Virus record (IMG/VR): IMGVR_UViG_3300031997_000001
Span: 124,001-188,000 of that record
Length of the DNA stretch: 64,000 bases
Direction: 5' to 3' (one strand)
Made by a program: the position numbers and the translations under genes. Positions 2,880-52,439 of this stretch are shown piece after piece (positions within the stretch are counted from its first letter, which is position 1; the number at the start of each line of letters is the position of its first letter). The notes under the pieces are model-generated. The model was not told where the DNA came from. It ran no database searches and saw only the letters and a list, made by a program, of their open reading frames with translations.

Positions 2880-3338
2880 ATGTGCCAGGTCCTCATTCTC
2901 TCGCAGGACATTGACTTCAGCTCTACAGCCTTCTCGAGGCTGAGAGGAGCTGGCCACACCGTGAAGATCGTAGGCGCCGACCTGGATGTCCTGTTCGAAC
3001 TAGGTGCCCTGGACTCGCCTTTCGAATGCGTCATCATCGACGAGAAGGCAGGCGGACTAAAGGTAGTGCAGAGCATCCGGAGCCACGATAGTACGACAGG
3101 GATCATAATTGCATCGGAAGACGACTCTGAAGCTGCTGCAAAGCCGTACGCCGGCCTGGACGTCTGGAGCGTCGTCCATCGTAAGGAGTACGGCCTTCTG
3201 GTCGAGAAGGTTCAAAAGGCCTGCTCCATGGCGTCCATGAGCGCCACGCACTTCTTTAAGGTCAAGACGGCGGTCTCTGAAGCGGCGAAGTCTATCATGG
3301 ATGCGCAGGCCAAATTCTGCCAACACCACGCCACATGA
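2880..3338 (+). CDS. Response-regulator receiver-like protein
   Basis: VLILSQD...FECVIIDE..GGLKVVQSIR...IIIAS CheY-like pattern. Confidence 0.55.
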   Translation: MCQVLILSQDIDFSSTAFSRLRGAGHTVKIVGADLDVLFELGALDSPFECVIIDEKAGGLKVVQSIRSHDSTTGIIIASEDDSEAAAKPYAGLDVWSVVHRKEYGLLVEKVQKACSMASMSATHFFKVKTAVSEAAKSIMDAQAKFCQHHAT

Positions 3339-3577
3339 GCTATCCGATTTACGAACTGATGATCCGCCGCGGTCGGGAAGTGGGCGTATTCGGCGTCGGG
3401 CTGGTGCCGATGCAGAATGCGGACCCAGATCCCCAGACGTTTAGGCATCAATACTATTACAACACGCGCGAGAACATCCTCTACAAGAAGACGCAAGGTA
3501 ACGGAGGCGTTCCGTTCTGGAAGCGAACTTCGACTCCGGCATGCGCTCCGCCAGCCAGGTCCATTCCGCCGAGGTAA
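3335..3577 (+). CDS. Hypothetical protein
   Basis: ATGA overlap with upstream gene. Confidence 0.6.
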   Translation: MSYPIYELMIRRGREVGVFGVGLVPMQNADPDPQTFRHQYYYNTRENILYKKTQGNGGVPFWKRTSTPACAPPARSIPPR

Positions 3578-3579
3578 CC

Positions 3580-3813
3580 GTGCCCAGCGTATTCGTGTAC
3601 TGCCGCGGAGACATAAAAGAGTTCCAGTGGCCAGCGAGCAAGACAATTGGCGAAGCAGCTGTGGAGGCATCGAAAGCGTTTGATTATGCGCGTCCGCCGG
3701 ACATTCCACATTTTCAAGATCTCGAAGATCTCGTCCTCCAGCAATCCGATACCTTTACAAAGCTAGGGACCAGGGATGGGGATAGCTTCTTGCTCATAGC
3801 ACTTTTCTCATAG
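3580..3813 (+). CDS. Ubiquitin-like (beta-grasp) protein
   Basis: GTG after GAGGT; KTIGE...LVLQQSDTFTKLGTRDGDSFLLI resembles the Ubl TLxxxGIxDGxxLxL pattern; no terminal GG. Confidence 0.5.
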   Translation: MPSVFVYCRGDIKEFQWPASKTIGEAAVEASKAFDYARPPDIPHFQDLEDLVLQQSDTFTKLGTRDGDSFLLIALFS

Positions 3814-3837
3814 CAATTGGCGGCAGTATCTAAATAC

Positions 3838-3866
3838 TTGACAAACCGGATACCCTGTGGTATAAT
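3838..3866 (+). promoter_or_regulatory. Consensus sigma70 promoter with extended -10
   Basis: TTGACA(3838-43)-17 nt-TATAAT(3861-66), TGG before -10. Confidence 0.9.
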
Positions 3867-3892
3867 TGCGTGTGAAAGGAGGGAAAGAGGGA

Positions 3893-4092
3893 GTAGGGAA
3901 ATGCCGGTCCTGACGATTCCTCACAGACGTGTCCCGTATGTGAGGGGAGAAAAGCGAAGATTAAGTATCTGCACGTTCAGTGCAGTAGTTCCGGCGGGTG
4001 TCCGGCAAGTAGCCCGTGCAAGCGGGAACTCTCAGCGTGAGAGAACACCACTCCGTCGTCGTCTGTCATCGTCAGGATCGACATCTCCCTAC
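3893..4092 (+). ncRNA. Putative structured RNA / 5' leader (~200 nt)
   Basis: 25-bp closing stem 3893-3917/4068-4092 enclosing several hairpins including a GCAA tetraloop; directly downstream of promoter. Confidence 0.6.
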
Positions 4093-4968: not shown

Positions 4969-6891
4969 ATGTCTGATCTGATCCCGAAGGACAAAAAGCA
5001 AGCGGAACAACTGCCCCCGGACGGGCCGCTGATCGAACTTGGCCAGTGGTATTGGATCGATGACAATGACGACAAGGGAATCCTGCGCAAGAAGAGCTTC
5101 TTCGCTTGCGTGACCAAGATCGGGTCCAACTTCATCGAATGTCATAATCCCTTTGGTTCGTATACCCGCATCCATCTGGACAAGCTTTTGGATGAGTGTA
5201 GGTTGGAGCCTGAGCCCGAGAAGATCATCCGCGAACAGATGATGAAGTACCGAAGGGAAGTCCAGGAGAAGCTCGGCGAGATCAAGAACATCATGGCCAG
5301 GCTCGGACTTACGGAACTCCCCAAGCTCGGACACAATGCCCAGCCCCAGGAAACGAGCAAGGCTCTCTCCGTCATCGCGGCCTCAGAGGACGTGAACCAG
5401 TACAAGAAGAAGCTTATCGAGGCCAAGGAGAAGGATCTCCCCGCGCTGTTCGAGGAAGTGAAGGAGGCCAACGAGAAACTGGCCACTTGGATGCAGGCCC
5501 AGGCGCTTCCCATGGAGGCGGCGTCCGAAGAGCTGGAAGAGCGCCTGGGCCAGATCGACGACCGCATCTTCAACGTCTCGCTCTATGCCGGACTGACCGA
5601 GGACGTCAAGCAGGTCTCGGACGGGAAGCCGGCAGACAGCACGGATAGGCTTCACATCCTCCAGCGCCTCCTCTACATGGACGAGGAGTGCCTGCTGGAT
5701 TACAAGCACGGCGGCATGGAATTCAGCAATATCAAGAAATTCGATGCCTGGCTGGCCAAGCCCGGCAACCGCGACCGTGTCCTACCGTTCCCCAGGTCCA
5801 TCGTCGCCTTCCGCGTGCGCCGCGACGAGAAGGAACGCGATTATGATGGAAGCCTTGCCCAGGCCATGATCATCTTCGATCTGAAGGAGCTTGACAAGCT
5901 GACGTTCCTTTACATCCGGAATGGCGAGCGGCTCTACCGGATGAACTGCGACCTGGAATTCGGCAATCTGATCTTCCCCGGCCAGCACGAGCTCAATCTT
6001 TCCGAGCCCATGATGGCGAAGATGTTTTGCAGCCGGGTCAATGAAATCATCCCCAAGAGGGAGTTCGAAGACCTCGTCGTGAGGGAAAAGGAAAGGGTCG
6101 TCAAGGAGAAGGAGTGGAGGAAAGTAAATCCTGGTAAGAGCTGGATAGAGAATCCGTTTCACGAGTGGAGCGATAAGACCAGAGACTTTGAGCCCTTTGA
6201 CAAGACGAGCGTCTATTTCGATGAGATGAGCGCGGAGGTAGCCAAACGGATCAAGCAGTACAACCGGATCGCCGTCATCGTCCAGGGCCTGTTCGACCGT
6301 TCTGAGGTCCTGCATCCGCACCCGCCCGTCCAGCTATGGTCGCCGGGTGGCTTCGCTGCTGCCGTCGAGCTCGTTTATGACGGATCCAACACCCTGCATT
6401 ATGGAGACGCTCCGGACTTCGAGGCCTATCGTCTCGAGTGCAATAAGACCTTAAAGGAAGGCTCGATCGTCGTCGGCCAGCATGGCTATTGGCTGAATAA
6501 GGAAGTGGAGAGGGAACAGAATAGGCAGGAGAATAACTGGCGGTATAAGAACCCGCACGTGTCCGCGGCGTGGTATAAGCCCCCGGGGAATCCGGGTCCT
6601 GGCTATGTGGCTAAGGTGGCTTACTGGTTCCCCAAGAAGCGTCTCGCCGTGTTCAGGTGGATGCGCGAGCGGCAGGCGTTTGGGCGATATAATGATGGCG
6701 AGCTGATCCCCACTTCTGTTGCGGTGCCGGACACTCACCTGTTCAATGTGAGCGCCTATAAGCCCGGAGACTATAAGCAGTTCTTCATCGATCCGAGGAC
6801 ACGCGCTCAATACCTGAAATGGGCACGCATGCTGCTGGCTGCTGAGGATTACTTCTCAGGGCACATTAAAGTCGGGGAAGCTCCAGAATGA
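4969..6891 (+). CDS. Large hypothetical phage protein with N-terminal coiled coil
   Basis: 640 aa, SD GGAGG. Confidence 0.8.
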   Translation: MSDLIPKDKKQAEQLPPDGPLIELGQWYWIDDNDDKGILRKKSFFACVTKIGSNFIECHNPFGSYTRIHLDKLLDECRLEPEPEKIIREQMMKYRREVQEKLGEIKNIMARLGLTELPKLGHNAQPQETSKALSVIAASEDVNQYKKKLIEAKEKDLPALFEEVKEANEKLATWMQAQALPMEAASEELEERLGQIDDRIFNVSLYAGLTEDVKQVSDGKPADSTDRLHILQRLLYMDEECLLDYKHGGMEFSNIKKFDAWLAKPGNRDRVLPFPRSIVAFRVRRDEKERDYDGSLAQAMIIFDLKELDKLTFLYIRNGERLYRMNCDLEFGNLIFPGQHELNLSEPMMAKMFCSRVNEIIPKREFEDLVVREKERVVKEKEWRKVNPGKSWIENPFHEWSDKTRDFEPFDKTSVYFDEMSAEVAKRIKQYNRIAVIVQGLFDRSEVLHPHPPVQLWSPGGFAAAVELVYDGSNTLHYGDAPDFEAYRLECNKTLKEGSIVVGQHGYWLNKEVEREQNRQENNWRYKNPHVSAAWYKPPGNPGPGYVAKVAYWFPKKRLAVFRWMRERQAFGRYNDGELIPTSVAVPDTHLFNVSAYKPGDYKQFFIDPRTRAQYLKWARMLLAAEDYFSGHIKVGEAPE

Positions 6892-10138: not shown

Positions 10139-13100
10139 GTGGCGGTGGTGGAGGGGTGGGGAATGAGCCAAGACATGTCCGATAACCTGTGGCCTTCCCC
10201 AGAAGCCATTGCTTCCATTCTAGAAGCAGACCAGCTTACGACGAGCATAAAAGACGTACCGACTCCGGAAGTCATAAAGCCGGAGAGTCAGAAAACTGGT
10301 CAAGGTGAACAGAACCTTGCGCAAGCATGGCTTCTCGCCTGGCGAGAGCTCCTCTGGCAGCAATTCCAGGAAAACGCCAGGATCGGCAAAATGCCCCTGG
10401 AGAAGGCGATAAAAGACTATTCGGATGCCGTCTCGACTGCCCAAAAGAAGGCTACCGTACATTTCTTCGCTGGCGTGACATATGATGCCATTTCGAATGA
10501 AATCACGAAAGCAAGAGTTAGCGGCGACACGGAGAGGGTCAAGAAGTTCGAAGGCGAGCTTCAGAAATATCAGGATACGGTCAAGAAGCTAGTGAAGGAA
10601 GAACTGCCAGACTGGGATGCCAAGGCGATCAGCATCATTGAGAAACTGCCAGACATAAGGACTCTGATTAGTCAGGTCGTAATCGACGACATCAACCGGC
10701 TCAGGGACGAGCTTGGCAAGCAGGAGGACGAAATCGGCGCGATCATCGTACAACTCATGTCCGGGGACACCTTAGAAAAGAAGTTCGGCGACTTCGTAAA
10801 GAGGCTGGAAGAGAAGCTCAAGGCTGACGACAGGATCAAGAACTACGTCCAAGCCATAAACTGGGAGGAGCTTCGGAAGAAGGCCATCAAGCACACTATG
10901 CCGCAGGTGACCCTGACGAAGACTGGAGAATATGCGCCAGGCTCCAAGGAAGCAGAGGATCTTGCAAAGGCTAATGCAGATTTTGACAAGCTGACGCAAA
11001 GCCTGGGCGGGAGAGGCTTAGGTTCCGATCCAGGCTTAGGTTCCGACCCAGTGAGAGTCTTCGCAATCGACGACCAAGGCAACCAGAATAATCGCAGTTA
11101 TGCTACGAGCCATCGCGATAAGATCCACACACAAGCCATAAGGGACATCGTCGCAGAGATCATCGACGGCGTGGGAACCGATAAGTCGCTCATACCTGGC
11201 GACGTCAGGGCGAAGACGGAAGCGGGGAAGCCGGTTAAGACTACGGAGCCGGGGTCCCGGTTTTCCATCGACGCAAAGCCGGAGGAGATCGCCAGCCGCG
11301 CCGTCCGGACTATTGACTACGGCAGGGAAGGGGCGGAGGCTCGCAGGCGCGAGGAGAGAGAGGGGAAGCCGCTTGAAGGCGACAAGTTCGCCAAGGATCT
11401 CACCGGCGCCGTCTATCGCGTCTCGATACCGTTCACGCAGGACGGCAGGGCCAGGACGCTCCGGGCTTATGTATGCCTCGCCCAGCCCAGGAAAGAACTG
11501 AGCCCGGAGGCGAAGGCGAAGATCGACCCTTACGCCATAATCCGGGACAGGCTTGCCCCAGGTGAAGCATCGGCCCTTCAGGTCTACGTCTATTACGACG
11601 GCAAGATGGTCAGCAACGACTCGACGACCGGCATGGATCTCGGAGAGCCTCTGAAGAAAGTAAGCGGGTCCCTAGCCTTTAAGGACCCCAAAGAAGTCAT
11701 GGCAGACGTTGCCATGAAGCTCCTCGTCGGAAAGCGACACGAGGTTACGCCGGACATCTCCAAGGAAGAGATCAAGAAGCAAGCACGGGAGATAAGCGCG
11801 AAGGACGAAAGCGGTGCCCCGGGTAAGGGTGGATATGGCATCTGGCGCGTGGACGTCCCTTATTCGTGGATCGACTTCGACGACCCCAACGTCCTGGCCA
11901 TGAAGAGGCCAGAATCCAGTGGCAGAAAGAGGACTGCCCCACAGGCCTTGCAGCCCAAAGGTCGCGCTGAGACAGTCGGAAGGCATGCCGTCTCCAAGAA
12001 GACGCCGACTGACGAGCTGCCGGGCGAAGACAGCGGGTTAGCCGCGGCCAGAAAGACGGAAACGGTCCAGCTCTACATCAACTTCGGCAAGCTTTCTGAT
12101 CAGGAAGCTCGGAAACTCATTGACCGCGACGCAGGCAAGAAGGACATCCCCGGCGTCTCTACGTCGACATACGTGCAAGCGCAGGGGATGACCAACGCCT
12201 GGTACTGGCAGCAGAAGGTGGGCGGCCACGTCCAGGAAGTCGTCTGGGATGCCGGCGAAGAGTCGGATCCCAAGCTATCGGGATCGAAATCAAGAAAGGC
12301 GGTCCAAGCGAATGCGGTGCCAATCCCGGAGAAGATCTTCACCACACATAAGGACAATCCGAAGAAGATCGTCCAGCTCGTTGCCTTGCAAGTCTCCCAT
12401 ACGCTTGGTATCGACGATGGCGAGATCATCCTAGATAAGGGACTGCCTGGAAAGGTCTGGCAGGGTCCAACAAAAACGCCACGAGAGCCAGAGCCCAACG
12501 TCATCCGGATCGGCATCCGGCACTCTGCTAGAAGCGGTAAGACTGAAACCAAGGCAGCCCAGGCGCCATACAGGCTGTCGGACGACGAACGGAAGATCCT
12601 TCAGGCTGGTGAGGAGGCCGCGGAAAGGCTGCGCGCGAGATGGGATGCTGGCAAGTCCAAAATGTCCGAGGAGGAGAGGAACGAAGCGCTCCACCTCCTC
12701 AGGCGCGCCCTCGAGGTTGGCAAGAAGACAAAGGGCGACATGGCGTCTGTTGAAGGCGGTCTTGACCTTCCGGAAGAGTTTGCCTGGACCATGGTCTACG
12801 TGGCTAAGGATCCTGGAGATCCCGCGAGCGTCCAAGCTGCCCGCGATCTGGCCAAGAAGGACTATGCCGCAGAACGAAAAGAATGGGAAGCGGGAGAAGA
12901 AGAAAGCAGGTGGAAGTCAAAATCCGCCGAAGAGAAACACGCCCAGAAACTCGCCAAGATGGGCGATGCGTTGAAGCGGGCGGAAGATGAGGAATTGAGG
13001 GGAGGAGATCCTGATGAACTTGACGCGTCTGATGATAGTGGGGTTGACGTACCGGATGCCGGTGGTGCCGAAGTCCCTGCCAAGGCGCTTCCTGGCTTCC

Positions 13101-13213
13101 TAAGCGCCCCATCCAAGGGCGTTGGTGAAAGCAAGGCGTTCCTTGAGGCTTCCCGCCTTATCTCTGAATCCAAGGAGCTGATCCGAAGGCTTAGAGGGCG
13201 TGTCCGGAGGTAG
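10139..13213 (+). CDS. Very large charged protein, possibly head-internal/virion (true start may be 10163 or 10175)
   Basis: 1024-aa K/E/D-rich ORF opposite to flanking genes. Confidence 0.7.
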   Translation: MAVVEGWGMSQDMSDNLWPSPEAIASILEADQLTTSIKDVPTPEVIKPESQKTGQGEQNLAQAWLLAWRELLWQQFQENARIGKMPLEKAIKDYSDAVSTAQKKATVHFFAGVTYDAISNEITKARVSGDTERVKKFEGELQKYQDTVKKLVKEELPDWDAKAISIIEKLPDIRTLISQVVIDDINRLRDELGKQEDEIGAIIVQLMSGDTLEKKFGDFVKRLEEKLKADDRIKNYVQAINWEELRKKAIKHTMPQVTLTKTGEYAPGSKEAEDLAKANADFDKLTQSLGGRGLGSDPGLGSDPVRVFAIDDQGNQNNRSYATSHRDKIHTQAIRDIVAEIIDGVGTDKSLIPGDVRAKTEAGKPVKTTEPGSRFSIDAKPEEIASRAVRTIDYGREGAEARRREEREGKPLEGDKFAKDLTGAVYRVSIPFTQDGRARTLRAYVCLAQPRKELSPEAKAKIDPYAIIRDRLAPGEASALQVYVYYDGKMVSNDSTTGMDLGEPLKKVSGSLAFKDPKEVMADVAMKLLVGKRHEVTPDISKEEIKKQAREISAKDESGAPGKGGYGIWRVDVPYSWIDFDDPNVLAMKRPESSGRKRTAPQALQPKGRAETVGRHAVSKKTPTDELPGEDSGLAAARKTETVQLYINFGKLSDQEARKLIDRDAGKKDIPGVSTSTYVQAQGMTNAWYWQQKVGGHVQEVVWDAGEESDPKLSGSKSRKAVQANAVPIPEKIFTTHKDNPKKIVQLVALQVSHTLGIDDGEIILDKGLPGKVWQGPTKTPREPEPNVIRIGIRHSARSGKTETKAAQAPYRLSDDERKILQAGEEAAERLRARWDAGKSKMSEEERNEALHLLRRALEVGKKTKGDMASVEGGLDLPEEFAWTMVYVAKDPGDPASVQAARDLAKKDYAAERKEWEAGEEESRWKSKSAEEKHAQKLAKMGDALKRAEDEELRGGDPDELDASDDSGVDVPDAGGAEVPAKALPGFLSAPSKGVGESKAFLEASRLISESKELIRRLRGRVRR
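11014..11049 (+). repeat. 18-bp tandem repeat (GLGSDP x2)
   Basis: AGGCTTAGGTTCCGA(T/C)CC twice. Confidence 0.85.
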
Positions 13214-44535: not shown

Positions 44536-45300
44536 CTAGATGTCCAGAACCCTGGACCCGAGGTTGCCGAACTTCTGCAGGACCTGCTTGGACGCGCCGG
44601 TCTCGGCTTCCAGCGAACCCCAGTCGAAGTTGCTGGACGTCGTCGACGGACCGTCGTCGTCTCCCAGCCTGCGCCCACCCAGGTCGCCGAACTTCTTGAG
44701 GGCGGCGATGACGGAAGCGGCGATCCGCTTGAGCACCATCCGCACGCCGGCGACCAGCTTGTTCTCCACGTCCCATCGGCGGTCGAAGGCCATCGTTCCG
44801 CCGGCCTTGCTCTCGGCGATGGACTTGAGCTGCCAGGCCTGGTCCTTGTTGATGACCAGGTGGGTGACGTCCTTGGACCAGGAGTTCATGACCTCGGCGT
44901 AGACGAACTTGTTGGCGTCGTAGTTCTGCAGGATCTTGAGGGTGCCCGCGTCCACCTGGGGACCGAAGGGCTTCTTCTTCGACAGCTGCAGGTCGACGAA
45001 CTCGAAGCGGGCGATCTTGTACTGGTGGCCCAGCGTCTTAGCCACCTCTTCCTCCTGACGGAGCTCGCCGATCTGGGTCTCGACGTACTGACCCTCCTTA
45101 CGCGGCCGGAGCTTGTCCTTGAGCTTCTTGGCCAGGAACTCATCCAGCTCGGACTCCGTGGCGAAGTCCAGGACCTGTTCCGCGGACGATCCGCCGACGC
45201 GTCCCCATGAGAGGGTCAGCTTGAGCCCGTCCCTCTCGGTTTTGTAAAACTTGTTGTGTTGTGCGCTTTTGCACAGGTAGTACTTCACTTCTTTCGCCAT
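44536..45300 (-). CDS. WGR-domain protein
   Basis: HNKFY...LSWGRVG..Q; C-terminal FGxLGxR repeats. Confidence 0.8.
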   Translation of the reverse strand: MAKEVKYYLCKSAQHNKFYKTERDGLKLTLSWGRVGGSSAEQVLDFATESELDEFLAKKLKDKLRPRKEGQYVETQIGELRQEEEVAKTLGHQYKIARFEFVDLQLSKKKPFGPQVDAGTLKILQNYDANKFVYAEVMNSWSKDVTHLVINKDQAWQLKSIAESKAGGTMAFDRRWDVENKLVAGVRMVLKRIAASVIAALKKFGDLGGRRLGDDDGPSTTSSNFDWGSLEAETGASKQVLQKFGNLGSRVLDI

Positions 45301-45375
45301 GGGTTGCACTCCAGAGGAGGCTGAAGAAGTAGACAGTCATAGCTGCGGTCAGGGCCAGAGCGAACTCGGGAGCCA

Positions 45376-46568
45376 TCAGTGGATGGCGACCTCGACTGCG
45401 CGATTGCCGATGAGCTGCTTGTCGACTAGCATGGCGAAGACCTTCCCGGCTGCCTTCCCTTCCGTCTTGCCGTAGTGACGCTGCATCCCCTCGACCCCGA
45501 CCGTGGGATGGATGTGCAACCAGGCTACCCATTTGCCCGGCTTGTCCATGGACTCCTGCACCCGGATGAGGATTCTGTCTTTCTCTTTCTTCATCCCTCG
45601 TTCTCCTTGTTGAACTTCTCGATCGCCTTGGCCAGCTGCTCGGCGGCGGGGCCGAAGACGTACTCGTGGGACGCGTTCTCCTCGTCGACGAAATAGCCAG
45701 CGATGTAGGGTGCGATGGACAGGAGACCGAAGCTCATCGGAGCGATCCAGATTTCCCCATGGGCGTCGTAGCCCTTGGGCTTGCGGAACTTCTCGCCCTC
45801 GCCGGAGTAGAGCGTGCTGCCGTCCAGCTGCTTCCAGCCGTGCTTGATCAGCCATTCGCTGAGCGTCTCGCCCATATCAAGCCTCCTAGGTAAGGAACTT
45901 CTTGAGATCCGGCCGGAGCGTCTTAGCCTCCCTGATCTGGTTCCAGATGAACAGCCTCCGGAGCGGGACCGTGAATCCTCCCTTGCGGATCCTGTAGCGC
46001 TTGTCCAGCCAGGCCTTGAGCGTGGGATACTTCCCCTTTTCCCCGCGCCATGAGACGCCGCAGATCCCGTCGTCCGTGATGATCCCGTTGAACTTGAACG
46101 CCAGGTCGTTGATGAAGCAACCCTCGACCCAGGAGTCCAGATCTCCCATAGAGCCGTGCCGGATCTCGATCTTGTGCGAGCTCCCGAGCCAGATGGGGTG
46201 GGCGTGATCCTTCCACATGATGATCCCGCACCCGCCAGGACCCCAGCCGTCCCATCCCTTCTCGACCTTGACCTGGCCGCCGAATCGAGCCTTGCTGATC
46301 TCCGTCAGGGCGTCAAACAACTTGTCGCCTGTCAGCTTGTGGTGGGTCGTGATGTAGCCGTGGTTGGCCATCAAGCCTCCTAGTTGCAGACCGTGAAGTC
46401 CTTGACCTTCTTGTTCTTGCGCAGGGCCTCGCGGACGGCATCGATCACAAGGGGTCGAAGCTCGTCCTTCGGGAGGCCCTCGACGTCGATGATGAAGTCG
46501 TCCTTCGGGCCTTCGCCCAGCGAAATAGAGACGGAATTCATGAAGCCGCGATGGGGTTTCTTGCTCAT
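45376..46568 (-). other. Four small hypothetical genes (45376-45594, 45591-45875, 45886-46374, 46380-46568)
   Basis: Tiled ORFs with SD. Confidence 0.6.
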
Positions 46569-47413
46569 TTCAGCCACTCCTTGAACTGGTCGTAGGTGAC
46601 CACGTCCAGCCCGAGTTCCATGGCAGCCATTGCCTTGTTACTGCCGGTGCCGAGCGCCTTGACGATCAGGTGCGTGCAGTTCTTGGACACGCTGCTCCTG
46701 ACGACGCCGCCCAGGGACTCGAACTTCTCCTGCTCGGCTCCCGTGGGCCGGACCCCCGTAAAGACGATGGCCCGACCGGCCAGCTTGCCGCCCGTTGCCA
46801 CGGGCTTCGCCTTCTCGGCCTTCGCAATCTTGACGACCTTGAGCAGCTTCTTGATGAGCGGCAGGTTGGCCTCCACGCCGGCGGCCACGCCCTCCCGGAT
46901 GGCAGGTCCGAGAGTTTGGCACTTGCGGATGAATGCCGGATCCGAGAACTTCTCGGTCGTGTCCAGCCCGTTGTCCTCCACCATGTGCTTCGCGGCCCGG
47001 GTGCCCAGAAAGCGAACACCCAAAGATCCAAAAAATTCGTGAAGCTGGAGTTCCTGGGTCTTTCCGATCTCGTCCAGGATCTGCTTGGCGCGATCCTCGC
47101 CGAGTCGACCATTGCCCACTTTGAGATCTGCCAACTGCTTTTGGGTGAGCGCGTAAAGATCAGCGGGATCGCGGACCAATTCGCTATCCCACAGGGCGAG
47201 CTCAACCTCATCTCCCAAGAATTTGATATTCAGCGATTTTCTCCAGCGACGGACCTTCCTGATCAGACGCCCTTCGCATTCCTCATTCTGACAGAAGAGG
47301 GCTGGCCCGACACGCACAAGCTTGGACTTGCAAGCGGGGCATGAAGTAGGGATGGCGATGGGCTTGTCAAGCCGCTCGAGCTCGACCATCTTACCCTTGC
47401 ATTTGATTTGCAT
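46565..47413 (-). CDS. ligA: NAD-dependent DNA ligase C-terminal half (Zn finger, HhH, BRCT)
   Basis: PTSCPAC..FCQNEEC; LNIKFLG; DPADLY; LGVRFLG; IVFTG..GGVVRSSVSKNCTHLI; own GGAG SD. Confidence 0.85.
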   Translation of the reverse strand: MQIKCKGKMVELERLDKPIAIPTSCPACKSKLVRVGPALFCQNEECEGRLIRKVRRWRKSLNIKFLGDEVELALWDSELVRDPADLYALTQKQLADLKVGNGRLGEDRAKQILDEIGKTQELQLHEFFGSLGVRFLGTRAAKHMVEDNGLDTTEKFSDPAFIRKCQTLGPAIREGVAAGVEANLPLIKKLLKVVKIAKAEKAKPVATGGKLAGRAIVFTGVRPTGAEQEKFESLGGVVRSSVSKNCTHLIVKALGTGSNKAMAAMELGLDVVTYDQFKEWLK

Positions 47414-47451
47414 GAGGAATTGCTCCAGTATGTTAAAGGCAAACATAAAAC

Positions 47452-48312
47452 ATGAACATAATAACAGAATACAAGCAGGGATTGTCCAGTCTTATGCTTG
47501 CGCGCAAATATGGCATTCCAAAGTGCGCAGTTCTGCGGATTCTTGCAAAAGCTGGCGTTGAACGGCGCTCGCTTTCTGTCGCACTTAGAAAGTATGCCAT
47601 AGATGAGACTTTCTTCGATCGGATCGACAACGAACGGAAAGCGTATTGGCTCGGGTTCTTATTAGCTGATGGACACATACGCCATTCGGGTCGTTTCAAC
47701 AGGAGCGGGTCTGTAAGGGTGGCACTACAAGGGCGAGATGTGGCGCACCTTGAAATGCTCAAATCACACATAGGCAGCCAAAAGCCGATCAAGCTCACCA
47801 CCACAAATGCGGGGCACCCGTGTTGCATGCTTGATCTTCACTCTACGAGACTCGCGAACGTCCTGCTGTCTGCTGGCTGGACTGAGTTTAAAGAGAAAGG
47901 CGACTGCCGCATTTTAAGCACAGTACCGTTACGGTTGCGGCGACATCTCGTACGCGGCCTTGTAGACGGCGATGGTCACTTTCGGAGTTCTCCGGCTTAC
48001 AGGTGGAGAAACGGCAGGGTGTCGTACCAGCTCCATTTTGAGTTTGTCGACCTCCACCTTCCTATCGTTCAATGGGTCCAGCAGTACCTCGTGCGGCATT
48101 GTGCCATGCACCGCACAAAGGTATATCATCCATCAAAAGCTTACACGATCCGTTACGGTGGTAAGCAGGTCACGCGTATTTTGCGCCACCTCTACGCTAG
48201 CGCACACGTCGCACTTGAGCGGAAGGTAATTAAAGCACATGCTTTGCTTTCTGCTGCGTCTCCGTCCCCACAAATCCGCAGCCGGAGCACCGATAAGTCG
48301 GCTCCGCTTTGA
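47452..48312 (+). mobile_element. LAGLIDADG homing endonuclease gene, antisense inside ligA
   Basis: N-terminal HTH; KAYWLGFLLADGH and HLVRGLVDGDG motifs; LERK; atypical codon use. Confidence 0.85.
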
Positions 48313-49381
48313 TGCACTTCGGCACAACATCCCCAGCCCTGATGATGGCCACAGTCGATCCGAGCCTGGCCCCGAGGCGTTCGATCTCCTCCACGTTGTT
48401 GAGGAGTACGTTCGAGATGATCACGCCTCCGATTCCGACGGGCTTGACCTTTCCGGTCGGAATTATGGCCCCTGTATGTCCAATGGTGAAGATCACGTCC
48501 TCGAGAACGGTCTCCGCCCCGAGCGCCTCCCACTTGTACGCCCGCTGTCCCTTCGGCCGGTCGTCCGAGACGCCCATCGCCTCGGAAGCCGCGCAGTCGT
48601 TGAGCTTGACGACGATCCCGTCGACCTCGAAGGGCAGCTTCTCCCGCGCCTGGCCCATCGCCTCGTGCGCCTTCTCGACGTTCTCCAGCTTGGTCAGCTT
48701 CTGCATCAGGTGGACCTGGAACCCGCAGCTCTCCAGGAACTGGAGCTTCTGGAGCTCGGTGCCCACGATCAGCAGGTCAGACTCCGTGCCGACGACGTCG
48801 TACGGCAGGACGCGCAGATGCTCGCATCCGGCCCCGTCCTTGGACCGCATGACCCCGTTGCCCTGGTTGCGCGGGTTGGAGCCATCCGGCCAGTACTTCT
48901 TGAAGTCCTCCTTGTACAGCAGACACTCCCCGCGGATGAACCCGGTGAACGGGGTAGGGAGCTGCTTGATGATATGCGTGGACCTGAGGATGTTGACCGT
49001 CACGTCCTCCCCGACCTTCCCGTCGCCTCGGGAGACCGCCCGGACCAGCTTCCCCTTCTTGTACTCCAGGGAGAGCGAGCAGCCATCATACTTCCACTGG
49101 ACCACGACTTCCTTGACGGGGAGCTTGTCCCACCACTTCCCCAGCTCCTCGAGCGTCTTGACCTTCTCCTGGGAGCCCATCGCTATGGCGTGCTTGACCG
49201 GCTTGAAGAGGGAGCCAGCCGGCGGGGCGCCGACCGTCTTGAGGAAGTCGTTCTTGGGGTCCAGCTCCCGAAGCTGGTCGACCAGCGCGTCGAACTCGGC
49301 GTCCGTCAAGAGAGAGACGCCGGTGTTGTAATAGGCCTCGGAGGCGGCCTTCAGCTGGGCGACGATCGCGGTGATGCTCAT
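48230..49381 (-). CDS. ligA: NAD-dependent DNA ligase N-terminal half (adenylation + OB)
   Basis: YYN..DAEFD; KYDG; RGDGKVGEDVT; RGE; NPRN; DGIVVK; AYKW; RAGDVVP. Confidence 0.9.
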   Translation of the reverse strand: MSITAIVAQLKAASEAYYNTGVSLLTDAEFDALVDQLRELDPKNDFLKTVGAPPAGSLFKPVKHAIAMGSQEKVKTLEELGKWWDKLPVKEVVVQWKYDGCSLSLEYKKGKLVRAVSRGDGKVGEDVTVNILRSTHIIKQLPTPFTGFIRGECLLYKEDFKKYWPDGSNPRNQGNGVMRSKDGAGCEHLRVLPYDVVGTESDLLIVGTELQKLQFLESCGFQVHLMQKLTKLENVEKAHEAMGQAREKLPFEVDGIVVKLNDCAASEAMGVSDDRPKGQRAYKWEALGAETVLEDVIFTIGHTGAIIPTGKVKPVGIGGVIISNVLLNNVEEIERLGARLGSTVAIIRAGDVVPKCIKAEPTYRCSGCGFVGTETQQKAKHVL

Positions 49382-49569
49382 GCCAGTGTCTCCAATTCCC
49401 GACGCAGTTCCGTCTCCCCCATGTACTGAATGTTGGAGAGGTAGGAGTACAGCTCATCGTCGCTCAGCCCATCCCTGTTCGGCTTATAGTGCTCGGTCAG
49501 GAGCTTCCGGACCTCGGTGATGTCCAGTTCCTTCTGGGCCAGAAGCTGCTTCGCCTGATCGCTGGTCAT
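49378..49569 (-). CDS. Hypothetical protein
   Basis: SD GGAGG, coupled. Confidence 0.6.
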   Translation of the reverse strand: MTSDQAKQLLAQKELDITEVRKLLTEHYKPNRDGLSDDELYSYLSNIQYMGETELRRELETLA

Positions 49570-50189
49570 CAGTCCTCCTTCGTCTTGAGATCCTCGTCCG
49601 GGACGATGGTCCGGGTCATTCCAGATAATCCATCTCTCCACTTGAGCTTGAACATGGCCGGGTTGTCGACCGACTTATGGAAATCGCCGACCAGCTTCGA
49701 GCCGAGGCGCTTGAGCACGATCCCCTCGGTCTTCATGTCGCCGATGAGGGACTTGTAGAGCGCGGCGTAGCCCGTGGTCTGACCAGGAATGAGATGGATC
49801 GGCCATCTGGCACCGTCCACTCTGATTCCGTTGTAGATCCCGAACACCTTCGCGTACCGCTCCTCGACGGGGAGATGACCGACCCACTCGCCCCTCTCGT
49901 ACATCATGTCGAAGAGCCACATTCCCTCTTCCTTCCACGCCTCACGCCGGCAGGTCCACTCGGCGTTCAGGACCGTGCCATCCTCGAGCGGCAGGAGTTT
50001 GAGGGCATCTCTCATGTCGTCCGAGATGGCGAGCGGCTTCATCACGCGGGAGAGGACGACCAGTTCGCCCTTCTCTCGGAAGATCAGGGAGTTGTGTCCA
50101 TCGAGCTTCGGCTGGGCGACGTATTCGCCCTCCTTGATCATCTTCAAGGAATAGATGTGAGACGGTTTGTCAGGAAATCTGGGCTTGAT
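49569..50189 (-). CDS. Minimal ATP-dependent ligase-like nucleotidyltransferase, probable ATC start
   Basis: QPKLDG; NAEW; LFDM; EGIVLKR; FKLK; no OB domain. Confidence 0.75.
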   Translation of the reverse strand: MKPRFPDKPSHIYSLKMIKEGEYVAQPKLDGHNSLIFREKGELVVLSRVMKPLAISDDMRDALKLLPLEDGTVLNAEWTCRREAWKEEGMWLFDMMYERGEWVGHLPVEERYAKVFGIYNGIRVDGARWPIHLIPGQTTGYAALYKSLIGDMKTEGIVLKRLGSKLVGDFHKSVDNPAMFKLKWRDGLSGMTRTIVPDEDLKTKED

Positions 50190-50772: not shown

Positions 50773-51729
50773 CTAGATTTCCAGCTTCCTGACGTTCAGG
50801 ATCCGCTGGGCCAGCTCCTCGGCCGACTCGTTGAGCTCCTTGACCTTCACGTCGGGGACGATCTCCCCGTACATCTCGATCCGGTCCTTGAGCCTCTTGA
50901 CCTTCCTGAGCCGGGCTTCCATCCAGGTGATCTTGCCCTTGTCGGTGAGGTCCGGGGACAGCTGATCGACTTCCTCGGCCAGCCCCTTCACGACGGATTC
51001 CAGCTCCTCCAGCACGGACCGGCCGAGGGTCACCTTGGAGACTTCGGCATCCGGCACGGGGAGATACTCGAAGCGCGCGTCGTTGGTATTCGGAGAGAGC
51101 TTCGACACCAGAGTCGAAACCTTCTCCACGACGCCGTTGAACTGCGCCGGGACGAAGTAGACGTTGCCCTGGTCCCGCAGGGTGATCAGGTCCGCCTCCT
51201 CCTCGATGATGCGCTGGAGGTAGCGGGTTATGTCGCTCGAGTTGTACCGGACCTTCTCCTTCTCGAACAGCTCGAGGACCAGCTTGTTGATCGCGGCGTT
51301 GGCGGTGTAGCCGGGCATCTCGGAGATGAGGGCCTCGGCGAAGTTCTTCGTCTCGTAGTACTTGCTCTTGGACACGATGACCCGAGTCTCGGTCGTGTAC
51401 TTGAGCTCGCCGGACCCGACGGAGGTGCCGGTCAGCTGTTCAGCCGTGAACTGGAAGACGATGAAGTCGTCGTCCTCGCTGACCCGCCGGATGATCCGAC
51501 CTTCCTCCAGGTTGCGCAGGGCGCGGATGAAGGCACTGCGGTAATTATGTTCGCGAGCGTATTTGGTCGGGAGTCCGCTTTCCTCCAGCAGCTTGGTGAA
51601 CTCGTCCTTGGTGATCGAGACGTTCCTCACGTTCCAGAACACAACCGACCCCAAGATCGGGCAGTCCAGACCTTTCATCTTGAGGAAGAATTGTGCGCGT
51701 TTCTCCTGAGCAGTCATGTGCTCCTCCAC
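50773..51729 (-). CDS. DUF3150-like protein associated with the AAA module
   Basis: LGSVVFW; LRDQGNVYFVP; coiled C-terminus ending RKLEI. Confidence 0.6.
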   Translation of the reverse strand: MEEHMTAQEKRAQFFLKMKGLDCPILGSVVFWNVRNVSITKDEFTKLLEESGLPTKYAREHNYRSAFIRALRNLEEGRIIRRVSEDDDFIVFQFTAEQLTGTSVGSGELKYTTETRVIVSKSKYYETKNFAEALISEMPGYTANAAINKLVLELFEKEKVRYNSSDITRYLQRIIEEEADLITLRDQGNVYFVPAQFNGVVEKVSTLVSKLSPNTNDARFEYLPVPDAEVSKVTLGRSVLEELESVVKGLAEEVDQLSPDLTDKGKITWMEARLRKVKRLKDRIEMYGEIVPDVKVKELNESAEELAQRILNVRKLEI

Positions 51730-51773
51730 TTGGGATAGTCAAATATAGAACATAAGCAACATGGGGTAATGCT

Positions 51774-52439
51774 ATGAAGAAATGCGCCTGGTGCAAGACG
51801 CCAAAGCCGAATTCGAAATTTCCCCTGCATTATCCAGTTTGTTTTAAGTGCTTGGCCTATCGTGCGCGCAAAAGCAAGCCATGCAAGATTTGCGGAGTAA
51901 CCAAACCAAAGAAAAAATTCCCCCCAGCCAGTCTTAGGTGTTATGCTTGTGCTTGGGTTTGTAAGCGTAAAGACCCCAAATACCGGGAAAAATGCAACGC
52001 GTACAACAGGCGCCGGTACAAGGAAGACGCAGCTTACAGACAACACTATCTCGCCAAATGCCGGGTACGCAACAAAGAACGCTGGCGGCTGGGCTTGATA
52101 CAAGCCTACGACGAAAGCTCCCCACGCAGGTGGCTTTTTGCAAAGACGCGCAGAGGGAGAACACACGGGCGACGCAGTAACTTCAAGTGGGGCGTTAGTC
52201 TGGATTTCCTGTGTGGTCTTTGGGAAGACCAAAAAGGCAAATGTGCTCTTTCTGGTCTTCCCATGACAATGCAACGATACAGGCTTGATGGCGCATCCAT
52301 AGACCGGATCGACTCCACCAAAGGCTACGTGCCTGGGAACATCCAGCTTGTGTGCAAGGCCATCAACCTCGCGAAGAATAAGAACACGAACGAGGAGATG
52401 ATGGCATTCATTAAGGCGCTCCGGGCTATTCCTAGATAA
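51774..52439 (+). mobile_element. Free-standing HNH-type endonuclease with N-terminal Zn fingers
   Basis: QKGKCALSG...SIDRIDSTKGYVPGNIQLVC..IN..KN; antisense; lower GC. Confidence 0.75.

Follow-up and report, generated by a model that had tools for sequence, protein, structure and literature searches.

The locus lies in a 64,000-nt stretch (the window) of the genome of a giant phage from sediment, and it encodes an NAD-dependent DNA ligase (LigA) as two separate genes on the minus strand, with a LAGLIDADG endonuclease gene on the plus strand between them. The features are as follows.

48230-49381, minus strand: ligA N half, 383 amino acids (aa), with Ia, nucleotidyltransferase (K97-x-D99-G100) and OB domains plus a 21-aa tail.
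48233-48295, minus strand: tail of the N half, Y363-L383, YRCSGCGFVGTETQQKAKHVL, read as the first three quarters of a predicted beta-beta-alpha zinc finger; proposed ligands are C365 (48287-48289), C368 (48278-48280) and H381 (48239-48241).
47452-48312, plus strand: free-standing LAGLIDADG homing endonuclease gene, 286 aa, with an N-terminal HTH and motifs at 47644-47673 and 47947-47976; the last 24 aa are only the antisense of the ligase tail.
47414-47451: 38-nt spacer between the divergent start codons, holding the GGAG (47423-47426) that serves the C half.
46565-47413, minus strand: ligA C half, 282 aa, with a 17-aa head, native C4 zinc finger (CPAC...CQNEEC), HhH region and BRCT.
47363-47413, minus strand: head of the C half, MQIKCKGKMVELERLDK, in which Cys5 (47399-47401) is the proposed fourth zinc ligand.
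46912-48509: recombination block that distinguishes this genome from a co-occurring uninterrupted allele, comprising the OB end, tail, endonuclease gene, head, Zn finger and part of HhH.

To verify the arrangement, the reading frames were examined directly. A preliminary description, made from the sequence alone, had reported a ligase split by an antisense endonuclease without an intron or intein, and this observation was confirmed, with open reading frame (ORF) coordinates as given there. The N half ends in RAGDVVPKCIKAEPTYRCSGCGFVGTETQQKAKHVL followed by a stop codon, and the endonuclease ORF overlaps it by 83 nt (48230-48312). The ATG of the C half at 47413 is preceded by GGAG at 47426-47423 with a 9-nt spacer; this start is the one used by all homologous C halves, and a longer ORF from 47446 is probably not used. 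An independent sediment sample contained a 1,666-nt contig covering both junctions (46871-48536) with no differences, and the arrangement is therefore not an assembly artefact.

Pfam searches identified the adenylation domain (PF01653, E 6e-41), the OB domain (PF03120, 5e-19) and a weak Ia match (PF22745, 2.6e-4) in the N half, and BRCT (1.6e-7) with a weak Zn-finger match in the C half. Both halves aligned to solved LigA structures end to end, the N half to 1V9P and 2OWO over aa 16 to 359 and the C half to 1DGS residues 397 to 659. K97, D99 and G100 of the N half and C25, C28, C41 and C46 of the C4 finger are invariant, and an AlphaFold2 (AF2) model of the N half had a mean pLDDT of 89.9. The genome, which is 97% complete, contains one LigA adenylation domain and no ATP-type ligase above threshold. 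The endonuclease ORF carries two LAGLIDADG motifs, YWLGFLLADG (aa 65-74) and LVRGLVDGDG (aa 166-175), and matched phrog_4645 "endonuclease" (E 1.7e-41, aa 2-262), while Pfam LAGLIDADG_3 scored just under its cut-off (21.3 against 22.5 bits). GC content falls to 0.44 to 0.56 over this gene, against 0.58 to 0.69 in the flanks.

To determine whether the split is private to this phage, related loci were collected from metagenomes. More than 20 metagenomic phage loci carry LigA cut at the same place, and close and distant relatives of 33 to 92% identity have N halves of about 380 aa and separate C halves. All of these N halves end in Y-x-C-x2-C-x-F-x-G-x4-Q-x3-H, and all C halves begin M-x(1-4)-I/V-x-C-x-G-K-x-V-x-L. 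The tail and head are extra to a complete set of native ligase residues and are conserved in protein but not in DNA; synonymous differences are 0.91 (tails) and 0.80 (heads), against nonsynonymous differences of 0.36 and 0.38, and the Cys and His codons vary synonymously. The slot between the halves holds LAGLIDADG genes of two families, on either strand, or only small ORFs, or nothing: locus L004 has a 33-nt gap, L125 has overlapping ATGA, and L095 and L096 have gaps under 300 nt. This endonuclease did not make the split: the same split, with the same tail and head, occurs with a different LAGLIDADG family, with same-strand endonuclease genes and with nothing in between.

A broken gene on its way to decay, in a phage relying on the host ligase, was considered, because the endonuclease gene is foreign by GC content and the phage cannot be cultured to show function. 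However, both halves keep all motifs, both whole halves are under purifying selection (omega against the split allele L002 is 0.25 for the N half and 0.22 for the C half), the same split is kept across lineages and after loss of the endonuclease, and this is the only LigA of the genome. Decay is thus very unlikely, and the two halves behave as a conserved, selected two-gene ligase.

A hidden splicing step (group I or II intron, split intein or ribosomal bypass) was likewise considered, as homing endonuclease genes usually live in introns or inteins, and "fractured" phage genes with split inteins include a DNA ligase (PMC2677866). An Rfam search of 46000-50000 at E values up to 10 found no intron and gave only a chance frameshift-element hit, and only 38 nt are spare. 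Split alleles with a 33-nt gap or a 4-nt overlap of stop and start stay split, and endonuclease genes occur on either strand. The tail (21 aa) and head (17 aa) are far too short for a HINT fold, or for intein blocks of about 100 + 35 aa; they gave no intein or Hint hit in Pfam and lack the Cys1 and TxxH blocks, the terminal HN and the +1 Cys/Ser/Thr. No RNA runs could be found, and on this sequence evidence rejoining of the halves by splicing appears highly unlikely.

To evaluate the possibility that tail and head form one metal site, as the preliminary description had guessed for CSGC..H of the N half and the Cys of KCKG in the C half, we compared these peptides across loci. The four positions are invariant in more than 20 split loci, with the first three ligands on the N chain and the fourth on the C chain. 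In one relative (L058), tail and head are fused in a single 724-aa ORF, YACPRCGFVGNLQEQEKHHRICNSELVEL, giving the canonical C2HC spacing C-x2-C-x12-H-x3-C with a conserved aromatic core. Split counterparts of L058 exist at 97% and 83% identity (P0135 and P0137), and a finger-less intact relative exists at 69% (P0136). AF2 predicted a beta-beta-alpha fold for the fused finger (pLDDT 87 to 88 over residues 11 to 30) and, for the window's own tail, strands at 363-364 and 371-372 and a helix at 374-382. Two alignments put the tails or heads on the wrong cysteines, and the finger was therefore folded with tails only as its alignment; its second half had no alignment support (pLDDT 58 and lower). 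The nearest PDB folds were C2H2 and UBZ fingers, such as RAD18 UBZ (rmsd 1.4 Å over 32 residues), although these Foldseek matches are not statistically significant (E > 1). The spacing Y-x-C-x2-C-x-F-x-G...H-x3-C resembles classical beta-beta-alpha fingers of the C2H2/C2HC (UBZ, NEMO-type) kind, and a DNA pattern for the tail also hit eukaryotic C2H2 proteins (L052, L062 and L140); here, however, the finger is cut between the His and the last Cys with its two parts on different polypeptides, and Pfam searches with isolated tails gave nothing significant. The metal-site proposal is thus strongly backed by comparative evidence.

To trace how the allele arose, the window was compared with uninterrupted and split relatives. 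It is 100% identical in DNA to the intact allele L001 over codons 1 to 180 and 225 to 285, then drops to about 50%, whereas it is 83 to 88% (OB and tail) and 95 to 100% (first 75 codons of the C half) identical to the split allele L002; sliding identity to these two alleles delimits the recombination block. An intact allele co-occurs in the same habitat, as a 28.9-kb contig of run X13 carries 744 other letters in place of these 1,596 nt. Phylogenetic trees agreed: the window is sister to the intact sequence P0002 in the NTase tree (node value 99) and to the split sequence P0003 in the OB tree (node value 100), and the split state needs at least 8 changes on the NTase tree. The window's allele is a recombinant.

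Based on these data, we propose with moderate confidence that the phage makes its only recognisable DNA ligase from two separately translated chains, the N chain carrying the NAD-binding Ia, adenylation and OB domains and the C chain the native zinc finger, HhH region and BRCT. The N chain ends in C-x2-C-x12-H, a predicted beta hairpin plus the start of a helix, and the C chain begins with M-x-I-x-C followed by a strand; the two peptides would assemble around one zinc ion into a C2HC finger tying the catalytic core back to the DNA-binding half. In this view the gap is a slot, or landing pad, in which free-standing LAGLIDADG genes come and go, and the endonuclease occupies a split that already existed. 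The whole block (OB end, tail, endonuclease gene, head, Zn finger) would have entered an otherwise L001-like genome by recombination, most likely through endonuclease-triggered gene conversion with long co-conversion tracts ("intronless homing"), although ordinary phage recombination would give the same mosaic pattern. The gene order, the recurrence of the split, the conservation of tail and head and the mosaic structure are direct results of sequence comparison, while zinc binding, chain association, NAD+-dependent nick sealing, a requirement for the tails, endonuclease cleavage and homing are all inferred. The interpretation in the preliminary description was thus partly supported: the absence of a detectable intron or intein, the two-gene ligase and the inter-chain metal site are backed by comparative evidence, but creation of the split by this endonuclease is not, and the description missed that two-subunit NAD-dependent ligases are already annotated in T5-like phages and have a solved structure by name.

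Those enzymes (T5 ligA/ligB, AAU05253/AAU05254; "subunit A/B" in Demerecviridae; PDB 9HU3 and 9I5I, chains named "DNA ligase (NAD(+))" and "DNA ligase subunit B") are likewise two polypeptides cut in the linker between the OB domain and the native zinc finger, and both chains are similar in sequence to the window's halves. They have no C2H tail and no Cys head, as subunit A of the T5-like phage KIT04 ends RAGGIIPKIVEAF and subunit B starts MQIVIPTECPSC, and the chains of 9HU3 end and begin without them. No LAGLIDADG gene lies between the T5-type genes; KIT04 has an unrelated 185-aa ORF, and the genes overlap in a Salmonella T5-like phage (PMC7700153). A clasp is therefore not strictly needed for a split LigA, and the window's halves might work through native domain interfaces alone, as T5 LigA/LigB presumably do, with tail and head being an accessory finger (for example for DNA or partner binding) or a tolerated scar; the contiguous insert in L058 is compatible with this. 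We consider this alternative unlikely, as the four proposed ligands are divided three to one between the chains yet invariant under saturated synonymous change, a C2H site with no fourth ligand is, by established zinc-finger chemistry, not a stable structural finger, and the fused form has exactly H-x3-C.

Another alternative is that the finger is an old accessory domain of one LigA lineage that endonucleases later learned to target, rather than a module that travels with them. A contiguous finger exists in L058, and similar complete fingers occur in unrelated phage proteins (L019 and L099). However, the split state is scattered over the NTase tree next to finger-less intact sisters, the nearest relatives of L058 are split and its next relative is finger-less, and P0004 joins an intact-type OB directly to the tail. 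The same tail and head also flank a cut at a second site, inside the HhH region, in L007, L090 and L102. This alternative therefore seems improbable. A more far-reaching reading, which we offer only tentatively, is that the pair is a portable adaptor, a zinc finger cut in two that travels with free-standing homing endonuclease genes, such that wherever the cassette lands in frame the host protein is cut but re-joined non-covalently by the finger. This would be a third general way, besides self-splicing introns and inteins, for such elements to live inside essential coding sequence, and the two sites in LigA, the spread across unrelated LigA backbones, the turnover of endonuclease genes and the "healed" fused allele all fit it. 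So far the pair has been seen only in LigA, and a scan of the phage's own genome found only this one.

A megablast search of the region against GenBank phages and a search of the viral contig collection with the N half found nothing, and a protein search with the C half gave few relatives because of the word index. In the viral contigs, a head pattern gave no hit and a contiguous C2HC pattern gave only chance hits, and tblastn with a 28-aa tail found no LigA with the tail in GenBank phages. The Goslar and pPa_SNUABM_DT01 ligases are intact and have no finger, while the Felix O1 "DNA ligase" of similar length is an ATP-type enzyme and irrelevant here.

How selfish endonuclease genes invade essential genes without killing the host is usually explained by introns and inteins, and a further solution, assembly tails, was suggested by the single case of phage Aeh1 nrdA-a/mobE/nrdA-b (Crona et al. 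2011, PMC3045599), whose authors predicted that such tails would be hard to recognise. As here, a free-standing endonuclease gene sits between two halves of an essential DNA-metabolism gene, with extra C- and N-terminal tails at the cut; as is inferred here, there is no RNA or protein splicing and the tails were acquired with the insertion, and in Aeh1 these are needed for activity. Like the Aeh1 case, the window's ligase has a contiguous counterpart in relatives (L001). [quoted passage not shown] The tails described here would be a second, clearer case of assembly tails; they are a recognisable, conserved pair found in many lineages and at two sites, with a shared zinc site as an obvious candidate mechanism, mostly antisense LAGLIDADG occupants and natural controls in the form of intact, split, empty-slot and re-fused alleles, which makes the idea directly testable. 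The pair would be a natural, very small (about 38 aa), metal-dependent heterodimerisation device, and it offers a natural cut between the catalytic core and the DNA-clamping half of LigA.

Fractured phage genes (2009, PMC2677866) are also DNA-metabolism genes, including one DNA ligase, broken in two with an endonuclease gene in the gap and complementary peptides at the cut, but those peptides are intein halves that splice the chains covalently, whereas the peptides here can at most give a non-covalent, metal-mediated union. T4 gp39/gp60 (mobA) and Aeromonas phage 25 gp43A/43B (seg-like) (PMC2988022) are split replication genes associated with free-standing endonucleases; the enzymes differ and no conserved finger-like tails are described, but for phage 25 the endonuclease may have invaded a gene that was already split, as we argue here.

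To define the organization of the ligase locus, open reading frames were read directly from the window and assigned to domains, which placed the ligase on the minus strand as two genes with a third gene between them:
48230-49381, minus strand: ligA N half, 383 aa, carrying the Ia, adenylation and OB domains and ending in ...RAGDVVPKCIKAEPTYRCSGCGFVGTETQQKAKHVL followed by a stop codon.
47452-48312, plus strand: a 286-aa ORF with an N-terminal helix-turn-helix and two LAGLIDADG motifs.
46565-47413, minus strand: ligA C half, reading MQIKCKGKMVELERLDKPIAIPTSCPAC... from its start and continuing through a complete C4 zinc finger, the HhH region and BRCT.

The C half is best started at the ATG at 47413, as this codon has GGAG nine bases upstream and every homologous C half starts there. 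The plus-strand ORF matches phrog_4645 "endonuclease" at E 1.7e-41 over residues 2-262. Its last 24 residues lie outside the family profile and are simply the antisense of the ligase tail; the 83-nt overlap with the N half is therefore a run-on of the endonuclease frame and not a shared functional segment. GC content drops to 0.44-0.56 over the endonuclease gene, and falls in much the same way, to 0.46-0.50, at 51600-52000, just beyond the DUF6744-like gene, which may be another foreign insert. A contig from another sediment sample covers both junctions without a single difference. The arrangement set out in the preliminary description is confirmed. The genome, an IMG/VR virus record of 235 kb rated 97% complete, has one LigA adenylation domain and no ATP-type ligase above threshold.

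To test the possibility that the halves are rejoined by splicing, the locus was searched for introns and inteins. Rfam found no intron at E values up to 10, and only 38 nt are not coding. In comparison with uninterrupted relatives, the native ligase residues are complete on both sides of the cut, while the N half carries 21 extra residues (the tail) and the C half 17 extra residues (the head). These extensions are far too short for intein halves, show no intein blocks and gave no Hint match. Furthermore, related loci keep the two genes separate with only 33 nt between them (contig L004) or with the stop and start codons overlapping as ATGA (contig L125), which leaves no room for any intervening element. 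Together, these results argue against any splicing step.

To determine whether the split is confined to this phage, a protein search was conducted with the N half, and both forms of the ligase were returned. Full-length relatives included proteins P0002 at 82%, P0005 at 61% and P0006 at 57% identity, while relatives of about 380 aa included P0001 at 92%, P0003 at 73%, P0004 at 63% and P0009 at 50%, down to 37%. One further LigA N part, P0023 (398 aa), breaks off inside the native zinc finger (...PPTECIVCKSTLAKELGNQTGDQVPWGFFIDRTL) without the finger tail, and is possibly a third, different kind of interruption. The contigs of the relatives were retrieved, and viral and metagenomic contigs were scanned with a DNA pattern for the tail, giving more than 20 distinct loci in which LigA is cut at the same place. 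All N halves end in Y-x-C-x2-C-x-F/Y-x-G-x4-Q-x3-H, followed by one to nine residues, and all C halves begin M-x(1-4)-I/V-x-C-x-G-K-x-V-x-L. The split is therefore a family trait. Synonymous sites in these short stretches are saturated (0.91 for tails and 0.80 for heads), while nonsynonymous differences are 0.36 and 0.38, and the Cys and His codons themselves vary between TGC and TGT and between CAT and CAC. Selection therefore acts on the peptides and not on a DNA site. Whole-gene omega between the window and the split allele L002 is 0.25 for the N half and 0.22 for the C half. The window also carries a hypervariable indel patch in the adenylation domain (48759-48794, codons ~196-208 of the N half), where it reads GTESDL-LIVGTELQ and the intact allele L001/P0002 reads GIDTDFTGKETEEVSGSTELQ; contigs from three other sediment runs show further insert variants at this position.

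The content of the slot between the halves was then compared among the distinct loci. About twelve have a LAGLIDADG gene on the opposite strand (the window, L002, L005, L013, L021, L022, L025, L047, L073 and L092, plus L007 and L090, in which the cut lies at a second site described below), four have one on the same strand (L071, L079, L087 and L101), two have only small ORFs (L006 and L023), and four have nothing (L004, L095, L096 and L125). The endonuclease of the window belongs to a different family (phrog_4645) from all the others (phrog_11023), and shares only the helix-turn-helix with that of L002. Yet the window and L002 are 95-100% identical in DNA over the first 75 codons of the C half, and similarity begins exactly one base before the C-half start codon and ends 21 nt before the N-half stop. 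The endonuclease gene has therefore been exchanged within a constant frame; this endonuclease did not create the split but occupies it. The window's endonuclease family also sits at the 3′ end of ligases elsewhere, as a 108-aa ORF (134 aa stop to stop) at 12784-13110 on the minus strand of L013, found also in L121, lies immediately downstream of the C half on the opposite strand and is a half-size LAGLIDADG protein related to this family (E 3.9e-18).

Evidence that tail and head are two parts of one predicted zinc finger came from a metagenomic contig, L058, that encodes an uninterrupted 724-aa LigA in which the two are fused: ...NGKIYACPRCGFVGNLQEQEKHHRICNSELVELIPNTWSWPTHCPECG... This gives C-x2-C-x12-H-x3-C, the classical C2HC spacing, placed between the OB domain and the native finger. 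A search of 1.8 billion representatives with this segment found three informative relatives, namely its own split counterpart P0135, 97% identical and ending ...EQEKHHRKA; the matching C half P0137, 83% identical and starting VTITCKGERVELIPNTW; and an intact relative without any finger, P0136, at 69%. L058 therefore looks like a re-fused ("healed") allele. In agreement, AlphaFold2 predicts a hairpin plus helix for the fused finger, with pLDDT 87-88 over residues 11-30, and the same for the window's own tail (strands 363-364 and 371-372 and a helix 374-382, pLDDT about 80). The best Foldseek matches are almost all C2H2 and UBZ-type fingers, with RAD18 UBZ at an rmsd of 1.4 Å over 32 residues, although none is statistically significant for so small a domain. 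The tail DNA pattern also hits ordinary eukaryotic C2H2 fingers, and it repeatedly hit a recurrent reading frame of 49 codons between stops, ending YPCENCHFAGKLQLQPRLHRELRAY, in unrelated metagenomes (L033, L059, L068, L085 and about 10 more loci). Complete fingers of the same style, YKCDKCNFIGTTGDQAFGHTLDQPTH and YTCTWCDFIGTKSKQTRWHDDNC, occur in unrelated small phage proteins (L019 7367-7732, minus strand, and L099), and the finger type therefore exists elsewhere in phage proteomes. In the split form, the three putative ligands of the tail lie on the N chain and the fourth on the C chain, as the preliminary description had guessed from CSGC..H and KCKG.

Three lines of evidence point to movement of this module between backbones and sites. 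First, on a tree of the adenylation domain the split state is scattered, with at least 8 changes needed for 11 split rows, and split alleles pair with intact sisters (window with P0002, P0009 with P0013, P0026 with P0045, and P0061 with P0060/P0064, all starred). Second, the window is 100% identical in DNA to the intact allele L001 over codons 1-180 and 225-285 and then falls abruptly to about 50%, while its OB domain is sister to that of split P0003. Third, in sediment run X13 a 28.9-kb contig matches the window on both sides but replaces 46912-48509 by 744 other letters, which is the uninterrupted allele in a co-occurring strain. In L007, L090 and L102, the same tail (YRCPKCGFEGTEEEQRNH) and head (MKISCGGELVELEIV) flank a cut at a second site, a loop of the HhH region, and the OB/zinc-finger junction there is uninterrupted. 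In L007, a second free-standing LAGLIDADG gene (3114-3926, minus strand) lies just upstream of the ligase, and a 295-aa same-strand ORF of unknown function (5421-6308, plus strand; phrog_22215, weak) shares the slot with the endonuclease gene at the second split site. P0004 joins an intact-type OB directly to the tail. This is the pattern expected of free-standing homing endonucleases, which cut the endonuclease-free allele at a distance and spread together with flanking donor sequence ("intronless homing"; PMC2988022), although homing itself is inferred here.

Two-subunit NAD-dependent ligases are not new, as T5 has ligA and ligB (AAU05253, AAU05254; PMC3632103), and Demerecviridae records annotate subunits A and B. 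PDB entries 9HU3 and 9I5I hold chains named "DNA ligase (NAD(+))" (339 aa) and "DNA ligase subunit B" (248 aa), both of which match the halves in the window. In Vibrio phage KIT04, subunit A ends RAGGIIPKIVEAF followed by a stop codon and subunit B starts MQIVIPTECPSC, which is the same domain boundary but with no tail, no head and no LAGLIDADG gene; a 185-aa hypothetical protein that is not a LAGLIDADG protein sits between the two subunits of this T5-like phage (L161 2184-2741). No description of a split-finger LigA was found in the searchable literature, and no LigA with this tail appears among GenBank phage records. The idea that tails acquired with an endonuclease insertion reassemble a split enzyme was shown for Aeh1 NrdA (PMC3045599), where mobE is on the same strand and in the operon, and not antisense as the preliminary description had stated. 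Split-intein "fractured genes" are the other known solution (PMC2677866).

Overall, the interpretation offered in that description is partly supported: comparative evidence supports the absence of an intron or intein, a two-chain ligase and an inter-chain metal site, whereas the causal role given to this endonuclease and the Aeh1 detail are wrong, and the T5 precedent was missed. We consider the most likely mechanism, with moderate confidence, to be a two-chain LigA clasped by a split C2HC zinc finger, whose slot serves as a landing pad for homing endonuclease genes. Everything about zinc binding, chain association, ligase activity and homing is inferred.

Two neighbors of the ligase are conserved in synteny. 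A 192-aa ORF two genes upstream of ligA (49569-50147, minus strand), syntenic in L001 (202 aa) and L002 (207 aa), has a KLDGHN motif and gives weak matches to the ATP-dependent DNA ligase and RNA ligase nucleotidyltransferase domains (E 3e-4 and 1e-3, both below the cut-offs); it is a minimal nucleotidyltransferase of unknown role sitting beside the NAD ligase. A few genes downstream of the ligase lies a 257-aa ORF (44536-45309, minus strand) whose homologues in L001, L002 and L007 carry a WGR domain (PF05406).
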